A DNA stretch of 64,000 nt. It comes from Octopus sinensis (lineage: Eukaryota). The stretch is taken from contig NC_043004.1 of the NCBI RefSeq assembly GCF_006345805.1, positions 48,174,001 to 48,238,000 on the forward strand, given 5' to 3'. Of the stretch, positions 3,970 to 60,135 are shown in pieces. A program made the translations under genes and the position numbers. The notes below the pieces were generated by a model. That model was not told the DNA's origin. It did not search any database and worked only from the letters and a program-made list of their open reading frames with translations. Each line of letters opens with the position of its first letter. The first letter of the stretch is position 1.

Positions 3970-4825
3970 TATTATTATTATTATTATTATTAATCTAATA
4001 TTCTCTTATCCTTCATTAATACCGGTTCCCATATGCTGTTCATATCTGCACTCGGTCTGTTTAGGAGGTTGTGTCCTAGCATATTTGCTGCTTCTTTTAG
4101 TTTTCGTATTTTCCAGTGGTGTTCTCTGTCTATTATTTTAACTTCATCCCACAGGAAGAAGTGGTCTCCATTTTTCCATACATGATCAGCTGTACCCGAT
4201 TTATCAATATCTCCACGTGCCACAGCTTTGTGATGTTCCTCTACCCTTATTTTGAGGGGGCGGCATGTTTCGCCTTTGTATAACCTACCACAACTGCATG
4301 GGATGGAGTACGCGCAGTTCTTAGTCATATTCTCTTCTATTGGTGGTTTTACTCGAAGGAGATATTTGCGAAGTGTTGTATTACATTTGAATACTTTCCT
4401 GATGTCATATGGGCCGCATATCTTTTGTATCTTTTCGGAGAGGTCTTTCACATAGGACAGAGAGACTGTGGACAGCTTATTGGTTTCACCTTCTCTTTTC
4501 TTCATAATTGGAGTGGAGAGTATGCTTTTGGGATTGTTGTTGCTTAAAAGATTGTTGTTGAGCTTGATCATTTCTTCGTAGTGGGTATCACGATCGCTAC
4601 TTATATTCTTTGCTCGATGTTTTAGGCACTGAGCAATCCCTCTCTTTACGCTATATGGATGGTGGGAGTTGAAGTTGAGGTATCGTCCAGTGAAAGTCGG
4701 CTTGCGGTATACGGATGTCCTGAATCCATACTTGGTGCGTGTTATTAATAAGGCCAGGAATGCTAGCTGATGGTCTTTTTCCTCTTCCATTGTGAACTGT
4801 ATGGATGGCTTTATTGAGTTCACAT
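3640..4825 (-). mobile_element. Penelope-like element: RT C-terminus + GIY-YIG endonuclease, with terminal-repeat region at about 3640-3890
   Basis: ORF 3990-4823: SIQFTMEEEKD..LAFL...VYRKPTFTGRYLNFNSHHP, CAYSIPCSCGRLYKGET.RPL..RVEEH. Confidence 0.9.
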
Positions 4826-5306
4826 GATCTAACAGCTACTATTCTTGATGAATAAACACACACAGACACACACACAAATACTTACATATCTGTGTGGTAT
4901 TTTGTATCGTTTATTTGTTTCAAGGGGCATCACCTTCGAGATTATAGTCTTAATCGAATGAAATATATGTGTGTGTGTGAGTGTATGTATGTATGTATGT
5001 ATGTATGTATGTATGTATGTATGTATGTATGTATGTATGTATGAGTGTATATATGTATGTGTCTATATATGTATGTAAGAATAAATGTATGTATCTATGT
5101 ATATATGTATGTGTATATATATATATATATATATGTGTATATATCTATGTATGAATGTATATATGTAAGTAAGCATACACACATATAAATGTATATTTTT
5201 AACGAAGCATGTCACCTATATTCAGAAGGAAACCTTAGCACGTCAACATGTTAAACATGGAAAACTATAATACACGTTTGTTAATCTTGGTAATTTTTAC
5301 TTATTA

Positions 5307-6773
5307 CTACATTTTTGATATTTTCTTAAGGGCCAAACTTGCTATAGACTTTTTGTCAAACTTGCCACTAGCCAAAAGTGGAAATGAAGGAAAATATAAA
5401 ATATAATCAGGGTGCATCGATACACAATCAAAGACATCTGGATGCGGCATTGTTTCCGTACAAAACTTTTTCAATTCTACTTCATTGAATTCGTGATCTG
5501 GCCGAAGGGTAACGCAGGCGCATACACGTTCTCCAACTGCCTGGTCAGGGATTGGTACAACAACCACAGCATCTACACTCGGATGACGTCCGATGTAATC
5601 TTCAATAAGTTTAATAGATAATTTTACTGTACACTTCTTAATAAAATCAGTGCTTCTTCCAACCATTATGAGATCACCATCTTCAGTTAAGTAACAAACA
5701 TCTGATGTTGGATACCAACCATTTTCTAAACATGAAGTGCCATCCAGATATGTTTTTGCTATATATTTGCTTCGAAAATACAAATAGCCTGTCTTTCCAA
5801 TATCCACAACTCTCTTCTCCTCGTCAACAATTTTGATTTCCGTTCCTGCAACTGGTCGCCCGAGCATTCCTTGTTGATGTTCTGAAATGTTTTCTAGAGT
5901 AAACACTTTGTACGATACCGTGAAAGATTCAGTACTTCCATAAACAACTAAGAATGAATCTGCAACCTTCAAAGCATTTTCTATTGTATCCCGGGTAATC
6001 ATGTCTCCACTTGACAATAACGTAGGGACACGGAAATCGCGGTCGCTAAGTCGCTTCACATCTTGTGGTGCAACACCAACCATGTTACATTCTTCACTCT
6101 GCCATATCTTTATAACAAAATCGAGGTTCTTCGGATCATTCAACATTTCTACGTCTCGCTGACATGCAATGATCCTCTAGTTACCACATTCAGGAGATAT
6201 CCTCCAATATATCCCATTGGCCGACCACTAAACATGATAAGACGAGAACTCTCATTAAAATCTGAATCAGGTGAGATTAAGCATTCAAAATGGCTGTGAC
6301 AGATACCTTTGGGCACACCAGTGCTTCCTGAAGTCTGATTGATGGATGCAATATCTTCTGGGTCAATGTAAGGAAACTCAACCTCGTCATCGTCACTTAT
6401 TTCTGCCATCAATTTAGCAGCAGATAAAGCATTGGCTGGTCTGTGTGTATTGGACACATCAATGGCAAACTTCAAATCTGGACACGCTTCGCAAGATACT
6501 TTTCCATTATCGCTTATTTGTGCAATGGATAAGAAACTGTCCCAAATAGATTTGGAAACAAATACAACAGCACTGCATCCTTTTATAATAGATTTCATAT
6601 CTGCTAATCCAAACATTAATCTTATAGAATATGCTCCCGTCATCATGATTCCAATATCGTAGCTCATCCATTCTACACAGTTAGGAACACAAAATGCAAT
6701 CTTGTCTCCTTTTTCAATGCCTAATTTCATCAAAGACTTTGCGAACTTCACAGCTCCATCGTACATCTCTTTC
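5307..6773 (-). pseudogene. Cassette A: disabled ANL (acyl-CoA synthetase-like) catalytic exon
   Basis: Split into ORFs 6149-6766 and 5307-6146 by a 1-nt deletion near 6157. Acceptor is CAA instead of CAG (6774-6776). AATATA replaces AATAAA (5217-5222). Confidence 0.85.
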
Positions 6774-7398
6774 TTGTAAAGAAAAGTAGTATATTTAACA
6801 TATATGCTCCTAAGTACATAGTTTCATAATATAGTATATTGTATATACTTAATATTTCTGCATTTCCTTGAGAGGACTCAGAGCATCTTTGTTGATAATT
6901 GACTGATCTAGCAAGCAAAACTAACCAGAAATTGATGTAGATATCCTCAATCTGGAGTCTGCCCCAATGTATGCACAATAACGGACTCTGCTACAGACAT
7001 CTAAGATGCCAGATGGTGATACCTGTTTCAGGATTAAATCTACGGTCAAGTAGAGTGTTTCGAGATACAAAATAAGAACGCAAAAATATATTTACAGAAG
7101 AAATCCTGCAAGATATGTGAGCCAACATTTTCCCAGTTCTACAAATCTACCACCAGGGACTGAAACCTTTTACTAATCTTGGAAGGATGATAATCAACTC
7201 AATCGGATTTGAATTCAGAAACAGAAAGTAGCAACAAATACCACGAGATATTGCTTCCGTGACAGTAAGTAATACATAGTTCAAACGTACAGAAAACAAA
7301 AGACAAAGACAGATGACGGAACAACAAACAGGTGTATTACTTTAATGCATGGAAAGATTGGATAAGTCTTTGACATTACGGGCCTATGTTCATATATA

Positions 7399-7430
<32 letters not shown>

Positions 7431-7631
7431 CGTATGTATGTATGTATGTATGTATGTATGTATGTATGTATGTATGTATGTATGTGTGTACCTAGGTATG
7501 TATGTGAGTATCTCGGTATGTATGTATATATGTATGTGTATATGTATGTCTATATATCTATGTATGTATGAATGTATATATGTATGTAAGCATACACACA
7601 TATAAATCTATATTTAACGAAGCATGTCGCC

Positions 7632-7637
7632 TTTATT
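7632..7637 (-). terminator. AATAAA poly(A) signal of cassette B
   Basis: tttatt on + strand, at the same homologous position as in C and D. Confidence 0.6.
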
Positions 7638-7664
7638 CAGAAGGAAAGCGTAGCACGTTAACAT

Positions 7665-7856
7665 CTTCTGATTGATGGATGCAATATCTTCTGGGTCAAT
7701 GTTAGGAAACTCAACTGCGTCATCGTCACTTATTTCTGCCATCAATTTAGCAGCAGATAAAGCATTAGCTGGTCTGTGTGTATTGGACACATCAATGGCA
7801 AACTTCAAATCAGGACACGCTTCGCAACATACTTTTCCATTATCGTTTATTTGTGC
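7665..7856 (-). pseudogene. About 192-bp internal fragment of the ANL exon inserted in the 3' flank of cassette B
   Basis: Encodes AQINDNGKVCCEACPDLKFAIDVSNTHRPANALSAAKL...PEDIASINQ. Interrupts the sequence cacgttaacat|gttaaacatgg that is contiguous in C and D. Confidence 0.9.
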
Positions 7857-7919
7857 CATGTTAAACATGGAAAACTATAATACACGTTTGTTAATCTTGG
7901 TAAATTAATTTAATTATTA

Positions 7920-9387
7920 CTACATGTTTTTTATTTTCTTAAGGGCCAAACTTGCTATAGTCTTTCTGTCAAACTTGCCACTGGCCAAAAGTGGAAATGA
8001 AGGAAAATATAAAATATAATCAGGGTGCATCGAAACACAATCAAAGTTATCTGGATCCGGCATTGTTTCCGTGCAAAACTTTTTCAATTCTTCTTCTTTG
8101 AACTCGTGATTTGGCAGAAGGGTAACGCACGCGCATACACGTTCTCCAACGGCCTGGTCAGGGATTGGTACAACAACCACAGCATCTACACTCGGATGAC
8201 GTCCGATGTAATCTTCAATAAGTTTAATAGATAGCTTTACTGTACACTTCTTAATAAGATCTGTGCTTCTTCCAACCATTATGAGATGACCATCTTCAGT
8301 TAAGTAACAAATATCTGATGTTGGATACCAACCATTTTCTAAACATGAAGTACCATCCAGATATGTTTTTGCTATATATTTGCTTCGAAAATACAAATAG
8401 CCTGTCTTTCCAGTATCCACAACTCTCTTCTCCTCGTCAACAATTTTGATTTCTGTTCCTGCAGCTGGTCGCCCGAGCATTCCTTGTCGATGTTCTGAAA
8501 TGTTTTCTAGAGTAAACACTTTGTAAGATACGAAAATAGATTCAGTACTTCCATAGCCAACTAAGAAGGAATCTGCAACCTTCAAGGCATGTTCTATTGT
8601 TTCTCGGGTAATCATGTCTCCACCTGATATTAGCATATTGAGACGGAAATCGCGGTCGCTAAGTCGCTTCACATCTTGGGGTGCAACTCCAACCATGTTA
8701 CATTCTTCACTCTGCCATATCTTTATAACAAAATCGAGGTTCTTCGGATCATTCAACATTTCTACGTCTCCACTAACATGCAATGATCCTCTGGTTACCA
8801 CATTCGAAGGATATCCTCCAATATATCCCATTGGCCGACCACTAAACATGATAAGACGAGAACTCTCATTAAAATCTGAATCAGGTAAGTTTACATATCC
8901 AAAATGGCTGTGACAGATACCTTTGGGCACACCAGTGCTTCCTGAAGTCTGATTAATGGATGCAATATCTTCTGGGTCAATGTAAGGAAACTCAACCTCG
9001 TCATCGTCACTTATTTCTGCCATCAATTTAGCAGCAGATAAAGCATTGGCTGGTCTGTGTGTATTGGACACATCAATGGCAAACTTCAAATCTGGACACA
9101 CTTCGCAAGATACTTTTCCATTATCGCTTATTTGTGCAATGGATAAGAAACTGTCCCAAATAGATTTGGATCCAAATACAACAGCACTACATCCTTTTGT
9201 AATAGATTTCATATCTGCTAATCCAAACATTAATCTCATAGAATATGCTCCAGTCATCATGATTCCAATATCGTAACTCATCCATTCTACACAGTTAGGA
9301 ACACAAAATGCAATCTTGTCTCCTTTTTCAATGCCTAGTTTCATCAAAGCCTTTGCGAACTTCACAGCTCCATCGTACATCTCTTTC
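7920..9387 (-). CDS. Cassette B: ANL-superfamily adenylate-forming enzyme, catalytic (terminal) exon; 537 aa if spliced to exon 15961-16106
   Basis: Intact 486-codon ORF with TSGSTGVPKG P-loop, YGSTE, GWYPTSD, GRSTDLIK, SGKFD lysine. Acceptor cttttctttacag|G at 9388-9390. Confidence 0.9.
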
Positions 9388-10143
9388 CTGTAAAGAAAAG
9401 TAGTATATTTAACATATATGCTCCTAAGTACATAGTTGCATAATATAGCAGATTATATATACTTAATATTTCTGCATTTCCTTGAGAGGACTCAGAGAAT
9501 TTTGTTGATAATTGACTGATCTAGCAAGCAAAACTGCCCAGAAATTGGTGTAGATATCCTCAATCCGGAGAGTGACCCAATGTATGCACAAGAGCGGACT
9601 CTGCTACAGAGACCTAAGATGCCAGATGGTGATACCTGTTTCAGGATTAAATCTACGGTCAAGTAGAGTGTTTCGTGATACAAAATCGGAACGCAAAAAT
9701 ATATTTACAGAAACAAATCCTGCAAGATATGTGAGCCAACATTTTCCCAGTTCTACAAATCTACCACGAGGGACTGAAACTTTTTACTAATCTTGGAAGG
9801 ATGATAATCAACTCAATCGAATTTGAATTCAGAAACAGAAAGTAGCAACAAATACCACGAGACATTGCTTCCGTGACAGTAAGCAATACACAGTTCAAAC
9901 TTACAAAAAACAAAAGACAAAGACAGGTGACGGAACAACGAACAGGTGTATTACTTTAATGCACGGAAAGATTGGATAAGTCTTTGACATTACGGGCCTA
10001 TATTCATATTTATATATATATATATATGTATGTATCTATGTATGTATGTATGTATGTGTGTATATATCTATGTATGTATGAATGTATATATGTATTTAAG
10101 CAGACACACATATAAATGTATATATTTAACGATGCATGTCGCC

Positions 10144-10149
10144 TTTATT
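10144..10149 (-). terminator. AATAAA poly(A) signal of cassette C
   Basis: tttatt about 96 nt after the stop. Confidence 0.6.
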
Positions 10150-10244
10150 TAGAAGGAAACCATACCACGTTAACATGTTAAACATGGAAAACTAAAACAC
10201 GTCTGTTAATCTTGGTAATTTATATTTACTTATTACTACATTTT

Positions 10245-11703
10245 TTATATCTTCTTAAGGGCCAAACATTTTATAGTCTTTCTGTCAAACTTGCCACTGG
10301 CCAAAAGTGGAAATGAAGGAAAATATAAAATATAATCAGGGTTCATCGATACACAATCAAAGTTATCTGGATTCGGCATTGTTTCCGTACAAAACTTTTT
10401 CAGTTCTTCTTCATTGAACTCGTGATTTGGCCGAACGGTAACGCACGCGCATACACGTTCTCCAACTGCCTGGTCAGGGATTGGTACAACAACCACAGCA
10501 TCTACACTCGGATGACGTCCGATGTAATCTTCAATAAGTTTAATTGATAACTTTACTGTACACTTCTTAATAAAATCTGTGCTTCTTCCAACCATTATGA
10601 GATCACCATCTTCAGTTAAATAACAAATATCTAATGTTGGATACCAACCATTTTCTAAACACGAAGTACCATCCAGATATGTTTTTGCTATATGTTTACT
10701 TCGAAAATACAAATAGCCTGTCTTTCCAATATCCACGACCCTCTTCTCCTCGTCAACAATTTTGATTTCCGTTCCTGCAATTGGTCGCCCGAGCATTCCT
10801 TGTTGATGTTCTGAAATGTTTTCTAGAGTAAACACTTTGAAAGATACCAAAATAGATTCAGTACTTCCATAGGCAACACAGAATGAATCTGCAACCTTCA
10901 AGGCATGTTCTATTGTTTCTCGGGTAATCATGTCTCCACCTGACGTTATCATATTGACACGGAAATCGCGGTCGCTAAGTCGCTTCACATCTTGTGGTGC
11001 AACATTAACCATGTTACATTCTTCACTCTGCCATATCTTTATAACAAAATCGAGGTTCTTCGGATCATTCAACATTTCTACGTCTCCACTGACATGCAAT
11101 GATCCTCTGGTTAACACATACAAAGGATATCCTACAATATATCCCATTGGCCGACCACTAAACCTGATAAGACGAGAAATCTCATTAAAATCTGAATCAG
11201 GTAAGTTTAAGCATTCATAATGGCTGTGACAGATACTTTTGGGCACACCAGTGCTTCCTGAAGTCTGATTAATGGATGCGATATCTTCTGGGTCAATGTA
11301 AGGAAACTCAACTTCGTCATCGTCACTTATTTCTGCCATCAATTTAGCAGCAGATAAAGCATTGGCTGGTCTGTGTGTATTGGACACATCAATGGCAAAC
11401 TTCAAATCTGGACACGCTTCGCAAGATACTTTTCCATTATCGCTTATTTGTGCAATAGATAAGAAACTGTCCCAAATAGATTTGGATCCAAATACAACAG
11501 CACTACATCCTTTTATAATAGATTTCATATCTGCTAATCCAAACATTAATCTCATAGAATATGCTCCAGTCATCATGATTCCAATATCGTAGCTCATCCA
11601 TTCCACACAGTTAGGAACACAAAATGCAATCTTGTCTCCTTTTTCGATGCCTAGTTTCATCAAAGCCTTTGCGAACTTCACAGCTCCATCGTACATCTCT
11701 TTC
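10245..11703 (-). CDS. Cassette C: ANL catalytic (terminal) exon; 534 aa if spliced
   Basis: Intact 483-codon ORF with the same motifs (variants PKS, TLD). Acceptor ctttactttacag|G at 11704-11706. Confidence 0.9.
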
Positions 11704-12554
11704 CTGTAAAGTAAAGTGACATATTTAACATATATGCTCCTAAATCCATAGTTTCATAATATAGTAGATTATATATATTTAACATTTTTGCATTTCCTTG
11801 AGAGGACTCAGAGAATTTTGTTGATAATTGACTGATCTAGCAAGCAAAACTGCCCAGAAATTGGTGTAGATATCCTCAATCTGGAGTCTGCCTCAATGTA
11901 TGAACAATAACGGACTCTGCTACAGACATCTAAGATGCCAGATAGTGATACCATTTGGAGGATTAAATCTACGGCCAAGTAGAGTGTTTCGAGATACAAA
12001 ATCGGAACGCAAAAACATATTTACAGAACAAATCCTGTAAGATATGTGAGCCAACATTTTCCCAGTTCTACAAATCTACCACGAGGGACTGAAACTTTTT
12101 ACTAATCTTGGAAGGATGACAATCAACTCAATCCGATTTAAATTCAGAAACAGAAAGTAGCAGCAAATACCACGAGGCATTGTTTCCGATGCTTCAACTT
12201 CTCTACCAGTAAGCCTCCTTTATAAACAATGTACATCGATTTCCATTTCTAATAGACCATAAGTACGCCAAACATTTAAGATGAGCGTGACTCGAGTATG
12301 AATGTTTATGCTTCTACACACAAGAAAATATATTGGCATACAAACACAGGTACAATGAACGTTGCACGTCACCTGCTCTGTCATGCGTTGCCTGATCAAT
12401 AAGTATCAAGTCTTGCTATAGTAACGAAGCTGAAGAACGCAGAATAAAGCTACTTAGCACAGAATGACCTTGAACTCTGCTGCGCATGTGCACTAAGTTT
12501 TAACATACTAGCTTAGTTCCTGTTTACAACAGTTCCTGGAAGGAAAGTGTGTAG

Positions 12555-13094
12555 TGTGTGATCGTCGCTCTGACCATGATAGAGAAAGTTGAGCAGAGAA
12601 TCTGCATCAAGTTTTGCCAAAAGCTTGGTGAGACCTGCTCAAAGGCCTACGCAAAGTTTTCAAAAAAGTTTTCATCGTTCTCGACACAGTCAAAGAGATC
12701 TTATTCAACTGAAACCCGAGTGTCTTTTTGGTCTGCTGAAAACAGTTTTCGCACAATCTTGGGAGATACGCGTATCATACCCAAATCGTCGGTGATAACG
12801 GACTAAACTGAACCGTAACTAATCTACACAGCGCCCCATAACTCATGGATGGTGATTCGATGATTTTCCCTCAAAGCTTCACGCACATTTGCGATATTTT
12901 TCTCAGTTCTGCTGGTCTCCCAGAACGTTCATCAATATCGACATTTTTTCGGCCATATTGGAAACGTCTGGAACACTTGTACACTCGTGTGCGGCACATA
13001 CACCCCTCTCCATATACCTTTTGCAAATTTTGTAGATCTTGAGCGGGTTTCGCCATAACAGCTTCATCCGACATGGTCAATGCGAATATCACAC
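12555..13094. mobile_element. Two convergent mariner transposase 5' fragments
   Basis: + strand EQRICIKFCQKLGETCSKAY from 12558. - strand LQKVYGEGCMCRTRVYKCSRRFQYGRKNVDIDERSGRP from 13092. Outer ends are inverted copies (gtgtgatcgtcgctctgaccatg / rc gtgtgatattcgcattgaccatg). Confidence 0.8.
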
Positions 13095-13577
13095 GTTACA
13101 CACCTAAGATCCATGGTGGTAGAGTTGGAAAATGTAGAAACTCCCAATGGTAATCCATTTGGGTTGATGGTTAGGTGGATGAGGATAGATACCTAAGGTT
13201 CGAGGAAAAGGTAAGAGAGAGATGACGGCCCATAAGTGGTGGAAGTTCAGTCAGGTAGGATCAAACTGTGATAAGCAGGTGAAAGTATGTAATACATAGT
13301 TCAAATGTACAAAACACAAAAGACAAAGACAGGTGACGGTACAACGAACAGGTGTATTAGTTTAATGAACGGAAAGATTGGATAAGTCTTTGACATTACG
13401 GGCCTATATTCATATATATATATATGTGTGTATGTATGTATGTATGTATGTATGTATGTATGAACGTATGTATGTATGTATGTGTGTGTGTGTGTATATA
13501 TATCTATGTATGTATGAATGTATATATGTATGTAAGCATACACATATAAATGTATATATTTAACGAAGCATGTCGCT

Positions 13578-13583
13578 TTTATT
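13578..13583 (-). terminator. AATAAA poly(A) signal of cassette D
   Basis: tttatt about 73 nt after the stop. Confidence 0.6.
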
Positions 13584-13655
13584 TAGAAGGAAACCTTAGC
13601 ACGTTAACATGTTAAACATGGAAATCTAAAACACGTTTGTTAATCTTGGTAATTT

Positions 13656-15132
13656 TTACTTATTACTACATTTTTTTATTTTCTTAAGGGCCAAACTTGC
13701 TATAGTCTTTCTGTCAAACTTGCCACTGGGCAAAAATGGAAATGAAGGAAAATATAAAATATAATCAGGGTGCATCGATACACAATCAAAGTCATCTGGA
13801 TGCGGCATTGTTTCCGTACAAAACTTTTTCAATTCTTCTTCATTGAACTCGTGATTTGGCCGAAGGGTAACGCACGCGCATACACGTTCTCCAACGGCCT
13901 GGTCAGGGATTGGTACAACAACCACAGCATCTACACTCGGATGACGTCCGATGTAATCTTCAATAAGTTTAATAGATAATTTTACAGTACACTTCTTAAT
14001 AAAATCAGTGCTTCTTCCAACCATTATGAGGTCACCATCTTCAGTTAAGTAACAAACATCTGATGTTGGATACCAACCATTTTCTAAGCATGAGGTTCCG
14101 TCCAGATGTGTTTTTGCTATCCATTTACTTCGAAAATACAAATAGCCTGTCTTTCCAATATCTACAACCCTCTTCTCCTCGTCAACAATTTTGATTTCTG
14201 TTCCTGCAACTGGTCGCCCGAGCAATCCTTGTTGATGTTCTGAAATGTTTTCTGGAGTATAAACTTTGTACGATACCGTGAAAGATTCAGTACTTCCATA
14301 AACAACTATGAAATAACCTGTAAGCTTCAAAGCATTTTCTATTGTATCCCGGGTAACCATGTCTCCACTTGACATTAACATAGGGACACTGAAATCGCGG
14401 TCGCTAAGTCGCTTCACATCTTGTGGTGCAACACCAACCATGTTACATTCTTCACTCTGCCATATCTTTATAACAAAATCGAGGTTCTTCGGATCATTCA
14501 ACATTTCTACGTCTCCACTAACATGCAATGTTCCTCTAGTTACCGCAGTCAAAGGATATCCTCCAATATATCCCATTGGCCGACCGCTAAATGTGATAAA
14601 ACGGAAACTCTCATTAAAATCTGAATCAGGTAAGTTTAAGCATTCGAAATGGCTGTGACAGATACCTTTGGGCACACCAGTGCTTCCTGAAGTCTGATTG
14701 ATGGATGCAATATCTTCCGGGTCAATGTAAGGAAACTCAACCTCGTCATCGTCACTTATTTCTGCCATCAATTTAGCAGCAGATAAAGCATTGGCTGGTC
14801 TGTGTGTATTGGACACATCAATGGCAAACTTCAAATCTGGACACGCTTCGCAAGATACTTTTCCATTATCGCTTATTTGTGCAATGGATAAGAAATTGTC
14901 CCAAATAGATTTGGATCCAAATACAACAGCACTACATCCTTTTATAATAGATTTCAGATCTGCTAATCCAAACATTAATCTCATAGAATATGCTCCCGTC
15001 ATCATGATTCCAATATCGTAGCTCATCCATTCTACACAGTTAGGAACACACAATGCAATCTTGTCTCTTTTTTTAATGCCTAGTTTCATCAAAGCCTTTG
15101 CGAACTTCACAGCTCCATCGTACATCTCTTTC
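13656..15132 (-). CDS. Cassette D: ANL catalytic (terminal) exon, proximal; 540 aa when spliced
   Basis: Intact 489-codon ORF. Acceptor ctttactttacag|G at 15133-15135. 828-nt GT-AG intron to the exon ending at 15961. Confidence 0.92.
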
Positions 15133-15960
15133 CTGTAAAGTAAAGTGACATATTTAACATATATGCTCCTAAATCCATAGTTTCATAATATAGTAGATTA
15201 TATATATTTAATATTTCTGCATTTCCTTGAGAGGACTCATAGAATTTTGTTGATAATTGACTGAACTAGCAAGTAAAACTGCCCAGAAATTGATGTAGAT
15301 ATCCTCAATCTGGAGTCTGCCCCAATGTATGAGTGTTTCGAGATACAAAATCGGAACGCAAAAACATATTTACAGAACAAATCCTGCAAGATATGTGAGC
15401 CAACATTTTCCCAGTTCTACAAATCTACCACCAGGGACTGAAACTTTTTATTAATCTTGGAAGGATGACAATCAACTCAATCCGATTTAAATGCAGAAAT
15501 AGAAAGTAGCAACAAATACCACGTGGCATTGTTTCCGATTCTTCAAATACTCTACTAGTAAGCCTCCTGTATAAACAATGTATATCGATTTCCGTTTCTG
15601 ATAGACCATAAGTTAAGTACGCCAAACATTTAAGATGGGTGACAGAGGAAAATACGTCACTCGTGTATGAATGTTTGTGCTTCTACACAAAAGAAAATAT
15701 ATTGGCATACAAACACAAGTACAATGAACGTCGCACGTCACCTGCTCTGTCATGCGTTGCCTGATCAATAAGTATCAAGTCTTGCCATAGAAACGAAGCT
15801 GAAGAACGCAGAGTAAAGTTACTTAGCACAGAACTTTGCTGTGCATGTGCACTATCCTCTGTATGCTTTACCTTTATTACTATGGCAACAATTTGTATAC
15901 TTACTAATCAGACTTCGTATTTTGGGTTCAAATATTTCATTCACTTTTGCATATACTTAC

Positions 15961-16106
15961 ATGGTTATTTGGTGCCTTTTGAATTCTGCATCATAGCAAA
16001 CAATTGTTACTCTGTCTGGATATTTTTCAGCTCTCTTACGCAATCTTTCAGGAATCGTCTCATACGAAACTTGCGAATCCTCTTTTGTATGAAGGTAACT
16101 CGACAT
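15961..16106 (-). CDS. Single N-terminal coding exon of the ANL locus (48 codons + 2 nt)
   Basis: Hand translation: MSSYLHTKEDSQVSYETIPERLRKRAEKYPDRVTIVCYDAEFKRHQIT-AT|G, matching the acyl-CoA synthetase N-terminal pattern TIxExLxxxAxxxPD. caaaATG start context; donor CAT|GTAAGT. Phase 2 matches |G AAA GAG ATG of every cassette. Confidence 0.9.
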
Positions 16107-16157
16107 TTTGAAAAACCACAAACTTCACGTTTCTTATTTCTATCAACTGGTGTTGTT

Positions 16158-16190
16158 CTATAACCAGACATGAAAAAAAAAAAAGAAAAC
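16158..16190 (-). promoter_or_regulatory. Probable splice acceptor upstream of the start codon, implying a further 5'UTR exon
   Basis: Minus strand cctgttttctttttttttttttcatgtctggttatag|aacaac, 51 nt before the ATG. Confidence 0.5.
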
Positions 16191-34516: not shown

Positions 34517-36308
34517 GCTGTTCTCAAGGCAGCCGGCTTCGGTCCAGTCTTCCGCGGGTGGATCGCTGCTTTATACTGCTTTATACAGCAACATCTGCTC
34601 GGTGATACGGGTGATGCCCTCTCTCCTCCCTTTTGTACATATTGACTCTCGAGCCATTACTGCGCAAGTTGGAGGCTTTGAGGGGTATCCCGCGCGATCT
34701 AGGAGGCGGAAACAGCGTGTCTGCCTATGCCGACGACGTCACCGTGATGGTGTCGAGCCACAGGCACATTGGCCTGATTGGCGAGACACTAAACGAATAC
34801 GAAGCGGTGACAGGGGCAAAGATTAACGCGGAAAAGTCTGTGGGCTTGCAACTGGGCACCTGGAGAGGCAAGCCCATGCCGTCCAACAGCGTCATAGGGC
34901 GCTGGACAGACGGACCCGTTAAACTGCTCAGGGTCTGGTTCGGTCCGGACCTCCAGGTGGATAAAAACTGGGAAGAAGTGACGAGCAGGGTGGCACGTCT
35001 CACCCAGAAATGGGCCGAGAGGAAGCTGTCCCTGAAAGGTCGAGCGGAGGTGGCGAATGCATACATCGCATCCGTCATCTATTACCTGCTCTTCGACTTT
35101 TTGTGGAAGGGTCAGGTGCCACTGGTCAGGCGATCCATCTGCTGTCAACGACCGCTGAACGGAGGCCTTGGCATGTCGTGGTTACTGATGCGCAGACATG
35201 CGCTCAGGCTGCGACATCTCAAGCGTTTCCTAGACGGTGATCAGGTGTGGTCGTCTTTTGTCAGACGCGACTTTCCGCAGCTCGTCTCTTTGACAGAGCT
35301 GCAGACCTGGATCAAACGTAGACCGAGAAAGGGCGCTTGGCACCTCGAGTGCCGTCAAGCTCTCTCCGCCCTCCGTCAGGCGGGCAATGCGATCGGTTTT
35401 AGTTCCACTCGCGTTCTATAGAGGGTTAGTGGAGGAAAAATGCGACAACGTTCTCGGGGAAACTCTAGGCGTTGATGATAACGAACTGAGCGGTCTGTTC
35501 GGAAGGACTTTCGGGCCGGGGCCAATGGATAATTTCCAGAGGTCGCTCGCCTGGCAGTGCTACCGAGGGGCTCTGCCTGTTCGGGATAAACTCTACCGGC
35601 ACGGAAGTCCCATCAGCCGGGCATGCCCGAGGTGTTGCCAGGACGACGAAACCGTTCTGCACGCACTCGTCCAGTGCCCGAGTATTGCTGAACTATGGGT
35701 TTATGTCGAACAGCTACTGTAGCGTATAGGACGGATCTGGCTATCAGCCGAATCCATAGTGAAGATTGCCCCGCCGACCTCCTTTAACAAGGAGGGCGAG
35801 GCCGTTTTCCTGTGCCTAGTGGCTGTGGCGAAAGAGATTGTATGGTGGACCCGTTTGAAAGAGCTAATGTCAGACACTTTCCTCTTTGATCAAGGCCTCA
35901 TCAACTTTTTCAAGTTTCACTTGAAAAGGAAGATGAGGTTAGAGAGGAGAGTGCTGTCCTATAGCAAGTTTTCTGAAAGGTGGGTGAATTGTGCGAGAAT
36001 GGCCAGTATAAATGGACCAATTCTCAGGTTTCGCCTGTGATTGAAAAAGGTTTTATAAAAGGAGAAAGGGGCTCTCTACCCACCTTTTGACCAGGCTCCC
36101 GTTGGCTTTTATGGTTTTTTTTTCCACCAGGAACCTTTCGAAGCGCCTCCCCCTATTGGGAGTTTTTCATTGTTACAATCTTTCGTTGTTAAACAGTTTT
36201 TACTCGAATTTTTTCAAAAACGGACAAAACCCTTTGTAACCTTTCGTCCTGTTTTGTTCCTTTATGTTTACTAATCATGTGTGTCAGCCCTTGTGGCCAA
36301 TAAAAATA

Positions 36309-58984: not shown

Positions 58985-60135
58985 TGGTGGTGGTGGTGCT
59001 GGTGCTGGTGGTGGTGGTTTGGTGGTGGTTTGCTGGTGTGCTGGTGGTGGTGTGGTGGTGGGGTGGTGGTGCTGGTGCTGGTGGTGTGGTATGGTGGTGA
59101 TTGGTGGTGATGGATGGTGGTATGGTGCTGGTGGTTGGTGGTGGTGGTGCTGGTGGTGGTGATGGTGCTGGTGGTGCTGGTGGTGCTGGGTTGGTGCTGG
59201 TGGTGGGCTGCGGTGGTGGTGCTGGTGGCTGGTGGTGGTGCTGGTGGTGCTGGTGGTGTGGTGGTGCTGGGGGGGTGGGGTGTGGCGGTAATGGTGGTGC
59301 TGATGTGCTGGTGGTGCTGGTTGCTGGTGTGCTGGTGGTGCTGGTGGTGCTGGTGGTGATGGTGGTGTGGCGGTGACCCTGGTGTATGGTGGTGCTGGTG
59401 GGCTGGTGTGGTGGCTGGTGGTGCTGGTTTGCTGGTGGTGCTGGTGCTGGTGGTGCTGGTGGTGCTGGTGGTGATGGTGCTGGTGGGCTGGTTGCTGGTG
59501 GTGCTGGTGGTGTGGCGGTACTGGTGGTGTGATGGTGCTGGTGGGCTGGTGTGCTGTGCTGGTGGTGGTGGTGCTGGTGGTGCGGTGGTGCTGGTGTGCG
59601 GTGTGGTGCGGTGGTGCTGGTGGTGATGGTGCTGGTGGTGCTGGTGCTGGTGGTGCTGGTGGTGCTGGCGGTACTGGTGGTGACTGATGGTGCTGGTGGT
59701 GGTGGTGCTGGTGGTACTGGTGGTGGTGCTGGTAGTGCTGGTGGTGCCGGTGGTGCTGGTGCTGGTGGTGGTGCTGGTGCTGGTGGTGCTGGTGGTGGTG
59801 GTGCTAGGTGTGCTGTGTGCCGGTGGTGCTGGTGCTGGTGGTTGTGGTGGTGATGGTGGTGCTGGTGGTGCTGGTGGTGCTGGTGGTGCTGGTGGTGCTG
59901 GTGGTGCTGGTGGTGCTGGTGGTGGTGGTGTGGTGTGGTGCTGGTGGTCGATGGTGGTGGTGGTGGTGCTGGTGCTGTGCGGTGGTGGTGCTGGTGGTGG
60001 CGGTGGTGCTGGTGGTGGTGGTGCTGGTGCTGGTGCTGGTGGTGCTGGTGGTGCTGGTGGTGCTGGTGGTGCTGGTGGTGTGCTTGCTGGTGGTGCTGGT
60101 GTGGTGCTGGTGGTGCTGGTGGTGGTGCTGGTGGA
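58985..60135. repeat. About 1.15-kb cryptic (TGG)/(TGC) trinucleotide tract
   Basis: Seen directly; very low A content on + strand. Confidence 0.95.

Follow-up and report, generated by a model that had tools for sequence, protein, structure and literature searches.

Exon 1 and the cassettes

The stretch analysed here (the window, 64,000 nucleotides of Octopus sinensis DNA) carries on its minus strand a gene for an adenylate-forming enzyme (ANL superfamily), in which one short coding exon is followed downstream by four tandem cassettes of about 1.47 kb, each corresponding to about 90% of the protein. Exon 1, the constant 5' coding exon (15961-16106, minus strand, 146 nt), begins with an ATG, comprises 48 codons plus 2 nt, ends in phase 2 and encodes residues 1-49. 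Its 3' end reads ...ACC AT|GTAAGT, with the GTAAGT (15955-15960, minus strand) as the sole 5' splice site; the donor, CCAAATAACCAT|gtaagtatatgc, has the same letters in O. vulgaris and O. bimaculoides. Searches of the window, which contains no N, were performed with tblastn (E<=10) and with blastn (word size 7, exon 1 plus flanks), and returned a single exon 1 in 64 kb. The initial annotation had placed the N-terminus missing from the cassettes once, at 16106-15961 and with a GTAAGT donor, and had found it to join in frame to every one of them; coordinates, donor and single copy were all reproduced, as were the products of 540, 534 and 537 aa and the introns of 828, 4257 and 6573 nt.

The cassettes, named D, C, B and A in order of distance from exon 1, all lie on the minus strand. 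D (13656-15132, 540 aa with exon 1) is the proximal terminal exon, followed by C (10245-11703, 534 aa with exon 1), B (7920-9387, 537 aa with exon 1) and the decayed A (5307-6773). D, C and B each form a single open frame from acceptor to stop and are supplied with an AATAAA, the acceptor reading ...ctttactttacag|GAAAGAGATG in D and C and ...cttttctttacag|G in B. The AATAAA of D (13578-13583, minus strand) lies 73 nt past the stop, that of C (10144-10149, minus strand) 96 nt past it. In B, the 3' flank has received a 194-nt cassette fragment (7667-7860, minus strand, codons ~77-144), and the proximal AATAAA (7846-7851) sits within it and is not the ancestral signal; the flank-type AATAAA (7632-7637) follows past the fragment. 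Cassette A is a dead copy: it has a 1-nt deletion near 6158, which O. vulgaris shares, its AATAAA is gone, and in O. sinensis alone its acceptor has changed from AG to AA (ttacaa|G). The earlier statement that all four cassettes follow a splice acceptor holds for D, C and B and fails for A; that B and C keep reading frames, acceptors and AATAAA stands, with the qualification that the proximal signal of B came with the inserted fragment. An array of four cassettes was likewise correct within the window, and the array runs on past the window start. Each O. sinensis cassette carries an ATG 7 nt past the acceptor position.

The intron between exon 1 and D (15133-15960, minus strand, 828 nt) was duplicated in part along with the downstream cassettes, over its 3' 486 nt or about 790 nt, and the resulting units are 92-95% identical to each other. 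The remnant upstream of C (11704-12495, minus strand, 792 nt) is homologous to 15331-15854 apart from 78 inserted nt and reaches the equivalent of 15854, 107 nt short of the donor. Those upstream of B (9388-9873, minus strand, 486 nt, abutting the 3' flank of C at 9873) and A (6774-7259, minus strand, 486 nt, unit junction at 7259) meet the 3' flank of the preceding unit at an identical breakpoint (equivalents of 15537 and 13279). These lengths bear out the previous estimates of about 485 nt for A and B and about 790 nt for C, and the 107 nt missing from the latter. A spacer unique to the D-C interval (12496-13279, minus strand) extends from the end of the duplicated 3' flank of D to the start of the C remnant, at the position where an exon-1 copy for C would be expected. 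Within it lie two short inverted ORFs with a mariner-like appearance on visual inspection; a Pfam search with these two ORFs gave no match.

The exon-1 product aligns to DhbE residues 24-53, the N-terminus of the core. In an AlphaFold (AF2) model it contributes three strands (4-6, 33-38 and 44-48) and one helix (18-28) to the ANL N-terminal domain, with pLDDT 86-97, and on the evidence of this model exon 1 is structurally needed by the enzyme. The whole model superimposes on luciferases, 4-coumarate:CoA ligase and aryl-acid adenylases with TM ~0.8, and the invariant catalytic motif residues are G198, T200, K204, E331, D407, R422 and K520. Matches outside the cephalopods do not exceed 28% identity. 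Octopus sinensis is not known as a luminous species. A cephalopod-specific ANL clade includes the crystal luciferase candidates wsluc1-4 of Watasenia scintillans, and published trees place the squid proteins with acyl-CoA-synthetase-like proteins of O. bimaculoides at up to 40% identity; gene structure and shared exons are not described in the wsluc papers (PMC4899746; PMC7708342). The octopus enzyme is likened to this clade via those trees, which include O. bimaculoides proteins.

The locus in other Octopus species and in existing annotation

One exon 1 with several cassettes was also found in O. vulgaris and O. bimaculoides, so that the layout, for which conservation in other octopods was proposed earlier as a check, is now seen in three species. 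The O. vulgaris locus (L004, without any N) has a single exon 1 and, downstream of it and inside 19 kb, the cassettes D', C', B1', B2', A' and E'; the annotation splits the cassettes into separate single-exon genes. B2 is present in O. vulgaris only, and O. sinensis has one cassette fewer. In O. bimaculoides, RefSeq isoforms X1 and X2 have one exon 1 in common, as in O. sinensis, and use cassettes 1.8 kb and 12.9 kb downstream, with no assembly gap between cassettes 1 and 2. The internal ATG is replaced by ATC in O. vulgaris B1 and by GTG in O. bimaculoides cassette 1, with the frames open from the acceptor. In O. sinensis as in O. vulgaris, B and C have kept their reading frame and poly(A) signal; cassette E, a distal cassette past the window without an exon 1 of its own, is orthologous between species. 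The acceptor AG is present in 12/12 intact cassettes from four species and absent only in O. sinensis A. As it is present even in the frameshifted A' of O. vulgaris, acceptor retention does not separate live from dead cassettes.

In RefSeq, three isoforms from one O. sinensis gene, labelled 'medium-chain acyl-CoA ligase ACSF2, mitochondrial-like', are not merely similar to the proteins deduced here but identical to them: XP_029640038.1 (X1) is exon 1 plus D, XP_029640041.1 (X5) exon 1 plus C, and XP_029640039.1 (X2) exon 1 plus B. Gene calls on CM016866.1, the O. sinensis record to which the window belongs, have a common start at exon 1 and ends at D, C and B, and further RefSeq isoforms use cassettes outside the window. 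The RefSeq models at the locus are automated predictions. Two of them, X3 and X6, are B/E and A/E chimeras with a non-GT-AG junction; they look artefactual, and the model evidence at the locus is therefore noisy. For cassette F, a neighbour in this array, there are two kinds of model: one has a non-homologous coding exon at its 5' end (P0129, 95% conserved in O. vulgaris), the other omits this exon and gives a 486-aa product from three transcripts. The locus thus does include 5' exons that are specific to a cassette. The relevant clusters of the protein collection contained no Logan-derived members, no RNA read or transcript contig spanning the junction of exon 1 with C or with B was found, and a published description of the locus or its isoforms was not found in the literature. 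As far as these searches show, the layout is new for ANL enzymes and for cephalopods among the literature searched. The initial annotation, which knew of no such architecture in either, nevertheless overstated the novelty, because automated annotation already contains the isoforms in two species.

Divergence among cassettes

Where the cassettes differ in amino acids, the differences are concentrated in two patches, both of which align to segments of the ANL substrate pocket. Between C and B, omega was 0.25 for scaffold codons (P=5e-5) and 1.2 for the variable patches; in windows along the cassette, pN ranged from 0.00 to 0.126 and pS from 0.055 to 0.215. Judged from these values, the cassette is constrained outside the two patches. 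In the patches, E is nearest to O. bimaculoides cassette 2 (9.6%, versus 14-16% to all others), and omega for this pair was 0.36. The alignments indicate concerted evolution of the cassettes with retention of the variable patches. Conversion among copies can, however, bring 'purified' sequence into dead copies and so mimic constraint.

Comparisons between O. sinensis and O. vulgaris gave an omega of 1.0 for B (15 nonsynonymous, 4 synonymous). At 0.31, C does not outperform pseudogene A (0.35); the case for a functional B is weak. C, B and pseudogene A diverge by 1.4-1.6% between the two species, D by 0.5%. The intergenic DNA beside D diverges by 0.51%, matching D, which therefore provides no evidence of special constraint on this cassette.

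Proposed splicing, alternatives and comparable loci

We consider it probable that the locus is one ANL gene, in which the single exon 1 is spliced to alternative, duplicated last exons D, C, B or E. The ancestral gene would have had two coding exons. The second, of 1.47 kb, would have undergone several tandem duplications, each copy taking along part of the intron before it as well as the stop codon and poly(A) region, and the first would have been left out. Transcripts would begin upstream of the lone exon 1, assuming a single promoter, use its one GTAAGT donor, splice this to a single acceptor, that of D, C, B or, past the window, E, and end at the poly(A) site of the chosen cassette. Each mRNA would then encode a complete two-domain enzyme with residues 1-49 common to all products, differing mainly in the C-terminal tail and the two patches that align with the pocket of other ANL enzymes, and the products are likely isoenzymes with different carboxylate substrates. 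Anatomy and frame compatibility are observed, and the layout is conserved in three Octopus species. We infer that exon 1 is joined to the distal cassettes in vivo to a meaningful extent and, where C and B rather than D and E are concerned, that the cassettes are functional; D may capture nearly all transcripts, because the proximal acceptor and poly(A) site are its own. The splicing proposed in the initial annotation is partly supported: it has gained from the RefSeq matches, the layout in three species, the unconserved internal ATG and the modelled fold of the exon-1 product, and lost from the omega of about 1 in B and the different 5' exon modelled for F.

A considerably less probable reading, although the most serious competitor, is that exon 1 and D, perhaps with the old E, are all that works, C and B being young partial duplicates that drift towards the state of A, and splicing of exon 1 to them read-through noise made into isoforms by the annotation pipeline. 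The omega of B between sister species, the higher divergence of C, B and pseudogene A than of D, the difference in copy number caused by B2, the implausible chimeric isoforms in RefSeq and A itself, which shows that cassettes of this array do die, all fit this reading, and gene conversion could account for the low scaffold omega. The C-B scaffold value of 0.25, however, is below the roughly 0.55 that we estimate for one neutral and one constrained copy; the C-B differences are concentrated in the pocket patches, and the low divergence of D equals that of its intergenic neighbourhood. Moreover, B and C have frame and poly(A) signal in both sister species, whereas O. sinensis A has lost frame, acceptor and AATAAA, and E with O. 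bimaculoides cassette 2 represents an exon-1-less cassette that persists under constraint across species.

It is improbable that C and B are expressed from promoters or private 5' exons of their own, as truncated proteins (483-486 aa) or with a different N-terminus. The ATG 7 nt after each O. sinensis acceptor, the separate single-exon genes of the O. vulgaris annotation and both kinds of cassette F model point in this direction; against it, the internal ATG is unconserved, a truncated product would be without the helix and three strands found in solved ANL structures, and only 486-792 nt, derived from the intron, separate a cassette from the 3' flank of the preceding one. Least probable is an assembly artefact, in which copies of exon 1, or entire units, would have been merged or dropped during assembly and every cassette would have its own first exon: units of 92-95% identity are hard for assemblers and O. 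sinensis is one cassette short of O. vulgaris, but one exon 1 with several cassettes recurs in the assembly of each of the three species, the window and the O. vulgaris locus are free of N, O. bimaculoides cassettes 1 and 2 are ungapped, and the unit junction is repeated before B and A, so those units never contained exon 1.

With one exon 1 serving alternative last exons, the locus resembles the tandem-duplicated alternative-last-exon arrays of Anopheles GSTD1 (aggst1-alpha) and Drosophila lola, mod(mdg4), fruitless and broad. There, as here, a single constant 5' exon with its donor precedes several 3' units that are homologous and mutually exclusive; every unit brings its own acceptor, stop and poly(A) signal, and the specificity-determining region is in the variable part. 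The octopus array differs in that a single exon encodes ~90% of the protein and with it every catalytic motif, and in that use of its distal units is predicted. mod(mdg4) also employs trans-splicing, of which the octopus locus gives no hint. UGT1A and the clustered protocadherins, with variable first exons that have their own promoters and constant exons 3' of these, are a mirror image of the octopus layout. What they have in common with it is a tandem series of large duplicated exons, which supply substrate or ligand specificity and are spliced to a shared part, and concerted evolution plus diversification inside the array; their choice is made at transcription initiation, whereas in the octopus we propose that it is made by selection of 3' splice site and poly(A) site. 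Read-through splicing between tandem paralogues, as in the human CYP2C cluster, likewise connects an upstream exon of one copy with the homologous acceptor in another copy downstream, which is what is predicted for the octopus; CYP2C copies keep their first exon and promoter, with the chimeras as minor by-products, whereas the downstream octopus copies lack a first exon.

A constant exon and a tandem series of cassettes

The locus is probably an alternative-last-exon array giving isoenzymes, the best-supported of the readings considered here and favoured by its anatomy, the RefSeq isoforms, the layout in three species and the pattern of patches and scaffold. One exon-1 donor would serve several competing acceptors, each at the head of a full catalytic cassette that carries a stop and a poly(A) signal of its own; with a complete cassette behind each acceptor, the proposed products are isoenzymes.

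The constant exon and cassettes D, C and B of the initial annotation, with their in-frame joins, intron lengths and product sizes, were reproduced on the minus strand. Exon 1 (16106-15961, minus strand) runs from its ATG to ...CAA ATA ACC AT/GTAAGT (slash, exon boundary) and ends in phase 2. Cassettes D (15132-13656), C (11703-10245) and B (9387-7920), all on the minus strand, are each a single open frame from acceptor to stop, headed by a polypyrimidine-AG acceptor (...tttacag/GAAAGAGATG). Joined to exon 1 across introns of 828, 4257 and 6573 nt, they give in-frame products of 540, 534 and 537 aa, respectively. On CM016866.1 (window coordinate + 48,174,000), the donor lies at 48,189,961 and the acceptors at 48,189,132 (D), 48,185,703 (C) and 48,183,387 (B). 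Residues encoded within 60 nt of the junction set D (IKKRDKIAL) apart from C and B (IEKGDKIAF); C is distinguishable from B at KSII versus KSIT.

A canonical acceptor had been described before all four cassettes; this holds for D, C and B, but cassette A (6773-5307, minus strand) reads ttacaa/G and is decayed, with a 1-nt deletion near 6158 and its AATAAA gone. The AATAAA signals of D (13578-13583) and C (10144-10149) are on the minus strand, as are both signals of B. B and C do keep AATAAA as claimed, but the first signal of B (7846-7851) belongs to a 194-nt piece of cassette (7667-7860) that was inserted into the 3' flank of B; the second (7632-7637) is of the flank type. The variable part of such an array calls for two or more homologous terminal units, each equipped with an acceptor, a stop, a poly(A) signal and a phase that fits; D, C and B qualify, and A fails every point. 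Exon 1 is single, as had been stated: no second copy was found in the 64-kb window, which contains no N, by tblastn at the protein level (E<=10) or by blastn at the DNA level (word size 7). On the minus strand at ~16158-16190, a long T-run leading into ...ggttatag resembles a 3' splice site and lies 51 nt before the exon-1 ATG; a non-coding leader exon may therefore precede exon 1, with the promoter perhaps further upstream than 16190.

Self-alignment bore out the intron remnants previously estimated as short for B and A and as ~790 nt, ending 107 nt short, for C. B and A each retain 486 nt of upstream intron before the 3' flank of the previous unit, with an identical breakpoint (equivalents of 15537 and 13279), so that these two units never included exon 1. 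In C the remnant is 792 nt long; it reaches the equivalent of 15854 and stops 107 nt before the donor. Beyond this remnant lies a 784-nt spacer (12496-13279) with a single occurrence in the window. Two inverted short ORFs at 12558-13092 (MIVALTMIEKVEQRICIKFCQKLGE... and MIFALTMSDEAVMAK...DERSGRP), by eye resembling the N-termini of mariner-type transposases, sit in the spacer at the expected place of C's exon-1 copy. A transposon origin of the duplication breakpoint was considered and rejected, as the ORFs of 12496-13279 had no Pfam match and the spacer is unrepeated elsewhere in the window.

Protein family and predicted structure

The exon1+D product matched Pfam AMP-binding (PF00501) over residues 23-390 with 148.8 bits (cut-off 29.9) and AMP-binding_C (PF13193) over residues 439-493 with 36.7 bits (cut-off 24.5). 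D, C and B all show the ANL core motifs, namely the P-loop TSGSTGVPK (A3), YGSTE (A5), the Asp of A7, GRxxD (A8) and the catalytic Lys (A10), and residues G198, T200, K204, E331, D407, R422 and K520 are invariant in an alignment of 47 sequences. The AlphaFold (AF2) model has a two-domain ANL fold (pLDDT 89.5, pTM 0.86), with Foldseek TM-scores of 0.77-0.82 to luciferases, 4-coumarate:CoA ligase (4CL), PchD and DhbE. By these four domain, motif and fold criteria, the protein is a member of the ANL superfamily, the family recruited for squid bioluminescence. Two motif variants were seen in cassettes that are otherwise intact: the A7 motif of C reads TLD instead of TSD (window ~10590) in both sister species, and the A5 motif of cassette E, which lies downstream of the window, reads YGSIE for YGSTE in O. 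sinensis and O. vulgaris (P0003, P0125), with Thr retained in O. bimaculoides cassette 2.

Exon 1 aligns to DhbE residues 24-53 and forms a strand (4-6), a helix (18-28) and two further strands (33-38 and 44-48) in the model, with a pLDDT of 86-97; the splice junction coincides with the start of helix 49-65. Judged from the model, translation begun at the internal Met (Met52) would yield a protein without the exon-1 helix and strands. Two patches vary among the cassettes. Patch 1 reads RPMGYIGGYPLTAV in D, ...IVGYPLYVL in C and ...GGYPSNVV in B, aligned to DhbE PMAHNYPLSS, and patch 2 follows the YGSTE motif; both patches, we assume, line the carboxylate-substrate pocket, as in ANL structures.

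The RefSeq name 'ACSF2, mitochondrial-like' should be read as a best-hit label. The best sequence matches among solved structures are aryl-acid adenylases (DhbE, 1.5e-28), not ACSF2, and the N-terminus (MSSYLHTKEDSQVSYE) is acidic and, by eye, atypical of a mitochondrial presequence. Squid relatives share 24-26% identity with human ACSF2 (PMC4899746), and published trees group the Watasenia luciferase candidates (wsluc1-4) with O. bimaculoides proteins in a cephalopod-specific clade, to which the family of the present enzyme would belong (PMC4899746; PMC7708342).

Public annotation and layout in other species

Exon1+D has 100% identity to Octopus sinensis XP_029640038.1, named 'medium-chain acyl-CoA ligase ACSF2, mitochondrial-like isoform X1', and exact look-ups returned XP_029640039.1 (X2) for exon1+B and XP_029640041.1 (X5) for exon1+C. 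The isoforms deduced in the initial annotation are thus exact, but were already predicted in RefSeq. ORF-only versions of D, C and B were found by exact look-up in no source of the protein collection. CM016866.1 carries four gene calls with a common exon-1 start, ending at D, C, B and beyond the locus; isoforms using cassettes outside the window exist too, such as X4 (P0003) with cassette E. To our knowledge, the NCBI pipeline adds extra isoforms only where some alignment supports them. The protein-collection clusters of exon1+D, exon1+C, exon1+B and relatives contained no Logan (SRA-assembly) members, and the search results of the collection held no high-identity fragments for this gene.

The remaining isoforms X3 and X6 (P0126, P0127) were ruled out as extra cassettes, being B/E and A/E half-fusions without a GT-AG junction. 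X3 consists of exon 1, the first ~240 residues (first half) of B and the remainder of E, and X6 of the first half of A and the second half of E, the switch lying in a homologous GGYP codon run (window ~8803 in B, ~6190 in A). They look like template-switched (chimeric) cDNA or a modelling artefact and call for caution over the RefSeq models at this locus; if they derive from cDNA, B and A sequences would be transcribed. The O. vulgaris annotation calls the cassettes as separate single-exon genes, whereas RefSeq has one gene with isoforms, and this disagreement between isoforms and truncated genes affects octopus gene counts and expression quantification.

The layout is conserved in three Octopus species. 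The proposed check in other octopods returned one exon 1 and several cassettes in both O. vulgaris and O. bimaculoides, and a constant 5' exon with one donor lies upstream of all variable units in the window, in the O. vulgaris locus L004 and in the O. bimaculoides locus L002. In L004, which with a second O. vulgaris locus (L006) served as proxy for the O. sinensis cassettes downstream of the window, the 19 kb after exon 1 contain D', C', B1', a fragment, B2', a second fragment, A' and E' (primes denoting O. vulgaris cassettes); no second exon 1 was found in L004, and A' carries the frameshift of O. sinensis A. L002 has a single exon 1 with cassettes 1.8, 12.9 and 21 kb downstream; O. bimaculoides RefSeq X2 and X1 are exon 1 joined to cassettes 1 and 2, between which there is no assembly gap. 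The Argonauta hians orthologue has two exons with the same intron position and phase and a single cassette, and its paralogue carries a separate exon 1.

The three Octopus species share an identical exon-1 donor context, and the acceptor AG is retained in 12/12 intact cassettes from four species; since the frameshifted A' also retains it, an intact acceptor AG does not show that a cassette is live. In place of the internal ATG, which gives the cassettes the look of intronless genes, B1' has ATC (Ile) and O. bimaculoides cassette 1 has GTG (Val), though both frames stay open from the acceptor; this favours exon 1 over the internal ATG as the site of translation start.

Between B1' and A', O. 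vulgaris has the extra intact cassette B2' (L004 10001-11461), 3.6% different from O. sinensis B, plus the second fragment; in the corresponding interval (window 7667-9387) O. sinensis has only B where O. vulgaris has B1' and B2'. B1' and B2' differ by ~4-5% (recomputed from pN/pS). This exceeds the species divergence, so that either unequal crossing-over removed B2 from O. sinensis or the cassette was collapsed in the assembly of that species.

Cassette divergence and alternative readings

Orthologous cassettes of O. sinensis and O. vulgaris pair up readily; divergence between them is 0.5% for D, 1.6% for C, 1.4% for B and 1.4% for A, with omega values, resting on few substitutions, of 0.16, 0.31, 1.0 and 0.35, respectively. 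Sister-species dN/dS was discarded as a test of function, as pseudogene A, the control, gave 0.35 and the test was therefore undiscriminating; lineage-specific substitution counts (O. sinensis / O. vulgaris) are very small. Neutral divergence is heterogeneous (D-C spacer 0.51%, C-B spacer 2.25%, intron 1 8%, where an insertion disturbs the alignment), and the spacer adjoining D matches D itself, so the stronger conservation of D was dropped as evidence.

Comparisons at greater depth tell more: nonsynonymous differences between paralogous cassettes are strongly clustered. Paralogue omega is 0.65-0.94 in cassette codons 141-210 and 246-315 (window ~14710-14501 and ~14395-14186 in D) and in the C-terminal tail, and 0.00-0.41 in other windows, with comparable pS. 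Between C and B, scaffold omega is 0.25 (P=5e-5) and that of the two patches 1.2. In the patches, O. vulgaris E is nearest to O. bimaculoides cassette 2 (9.6%, versus 14-16% to all others), whereas in the scaffold it is nearer to its own-species paralogues (5.4-6.2%, versus 8.8% to O. bimaculoides cassette 2). These affinities suggest a mosaic in which the scaffold undergoes concerted evolution and the patches stay distinct. With an omega of 0.36 between E and its apparent orthologue, O. bimaculoides cassette 2, they also suggest that a distal cassette lacking an exon 1 of its own existed before the species split and was constrained. Scaffold omega of the dead A (0.23-0.29) is the same as in live cassettes; gene conversion can bring purified sequence into dead copies and so confound selection tests.

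C and B could instead be young duplicates born without exon 1 and drifting like A, with splicing to them as noise. We consider this unlikely, but several observations point to it: omega of B is ~1 between the sister species and its sequence gives no sign of recent constraint, copy number is in flux, with B2 in O. vulgaris only, and the RefSeq models are noisy.

A stronger form of that array reading is possible, though we hesitate to call it likely: a regulated isoenzyme generator, in which one promoter and N-terminal exon would be combined with a tandem library of whole catalytic cassettes, the 3' splice site and the poly(A) site being chosen according to tissue or stage; selection would hold the pocket patches apart while gene conversion homogenises the scaffold. 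It would lie in the cephalopod ANL clade that gave the firefly-squid luciferase candidates and would be older than the O. bimaculoides / O. vulgaris split. By analogy, the octopus locus is predicted to work similarly to constant-5'/variable-3' loci such as Anopheles GSTD1 and Drosophila lola, fruitless and broad, and would be the mirror image of UGT1A and the clustered protocadherins. Unlike loci of the GSTD1/lola type, it has ~90% of the protein, every catalytic motif included, in one exon; the enzyme family and the animal group are different too. A literature search found no description of this gene architecture; the array is unpublished as far as found, yet RefSeq already lists its isoforms in two species. 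Should the distal cassettes be used, the choice of last exon would exchange the whole catalytic body and leave only a 49-residue N-terminal piece constant, and partial tandem duplication would create new isoenzymes at once, the copy needing neither promoter nor first exon. With pocket patches that are diverged and orthologous across species and a scaffold homogenised within species, the locus would serve as a compact natural experiment in the substrate specificity of ANL enzymes.

Private promoters or 5' exons for C and B are improbable, given that the internal ATG is not conserved and that exon 1 has a structural role. A precedent is offered by cassette F (proteins P0129 and P0007; O. vulgaris L006 6735-6848 and 10001-11455), ~14 kb beyond E, which RefSeq treats as a gene of its own whose 38-residue 5' coding exon is non-homologous. 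This exon, 95% conserved in O. vulgaris, is joined to the same acceptor and in an unchanged phase. F is alternatively modelled as a 486-aa product from three transcripts, and no ANL-type exon 1 was found within 10 kb upstream of it. That exon-1 copies or whole units were collapsed in assembly is hardly credible, with three assemblies concordant and the unit junction repeated.

Returning to the array, microsatellites of the (ACAT)n/(AT)n type occur in the 3' flank of every unit, adjoining the unit junctions (13400-13560, 7281-7601 and 1332-1694), and may have been substrates of the unequal crossing-over by which the 2.3-kb unit was amplified. An ORF at 3990-4823 (277 aa) gave no match in a Pfam scan and a reverse-transcriptase fragment at 34633-35421 scored 22.7 bits for RVT_1, under the cut-off; both are presumably retroelement debris flanking the gene. 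A 1.15-kb degenerate trinucleotide array at 58985-60134 (TGG/TGC, period 3/9; GC 0.48, GC skew 0.455) yields spurious long ORFs on both strands.
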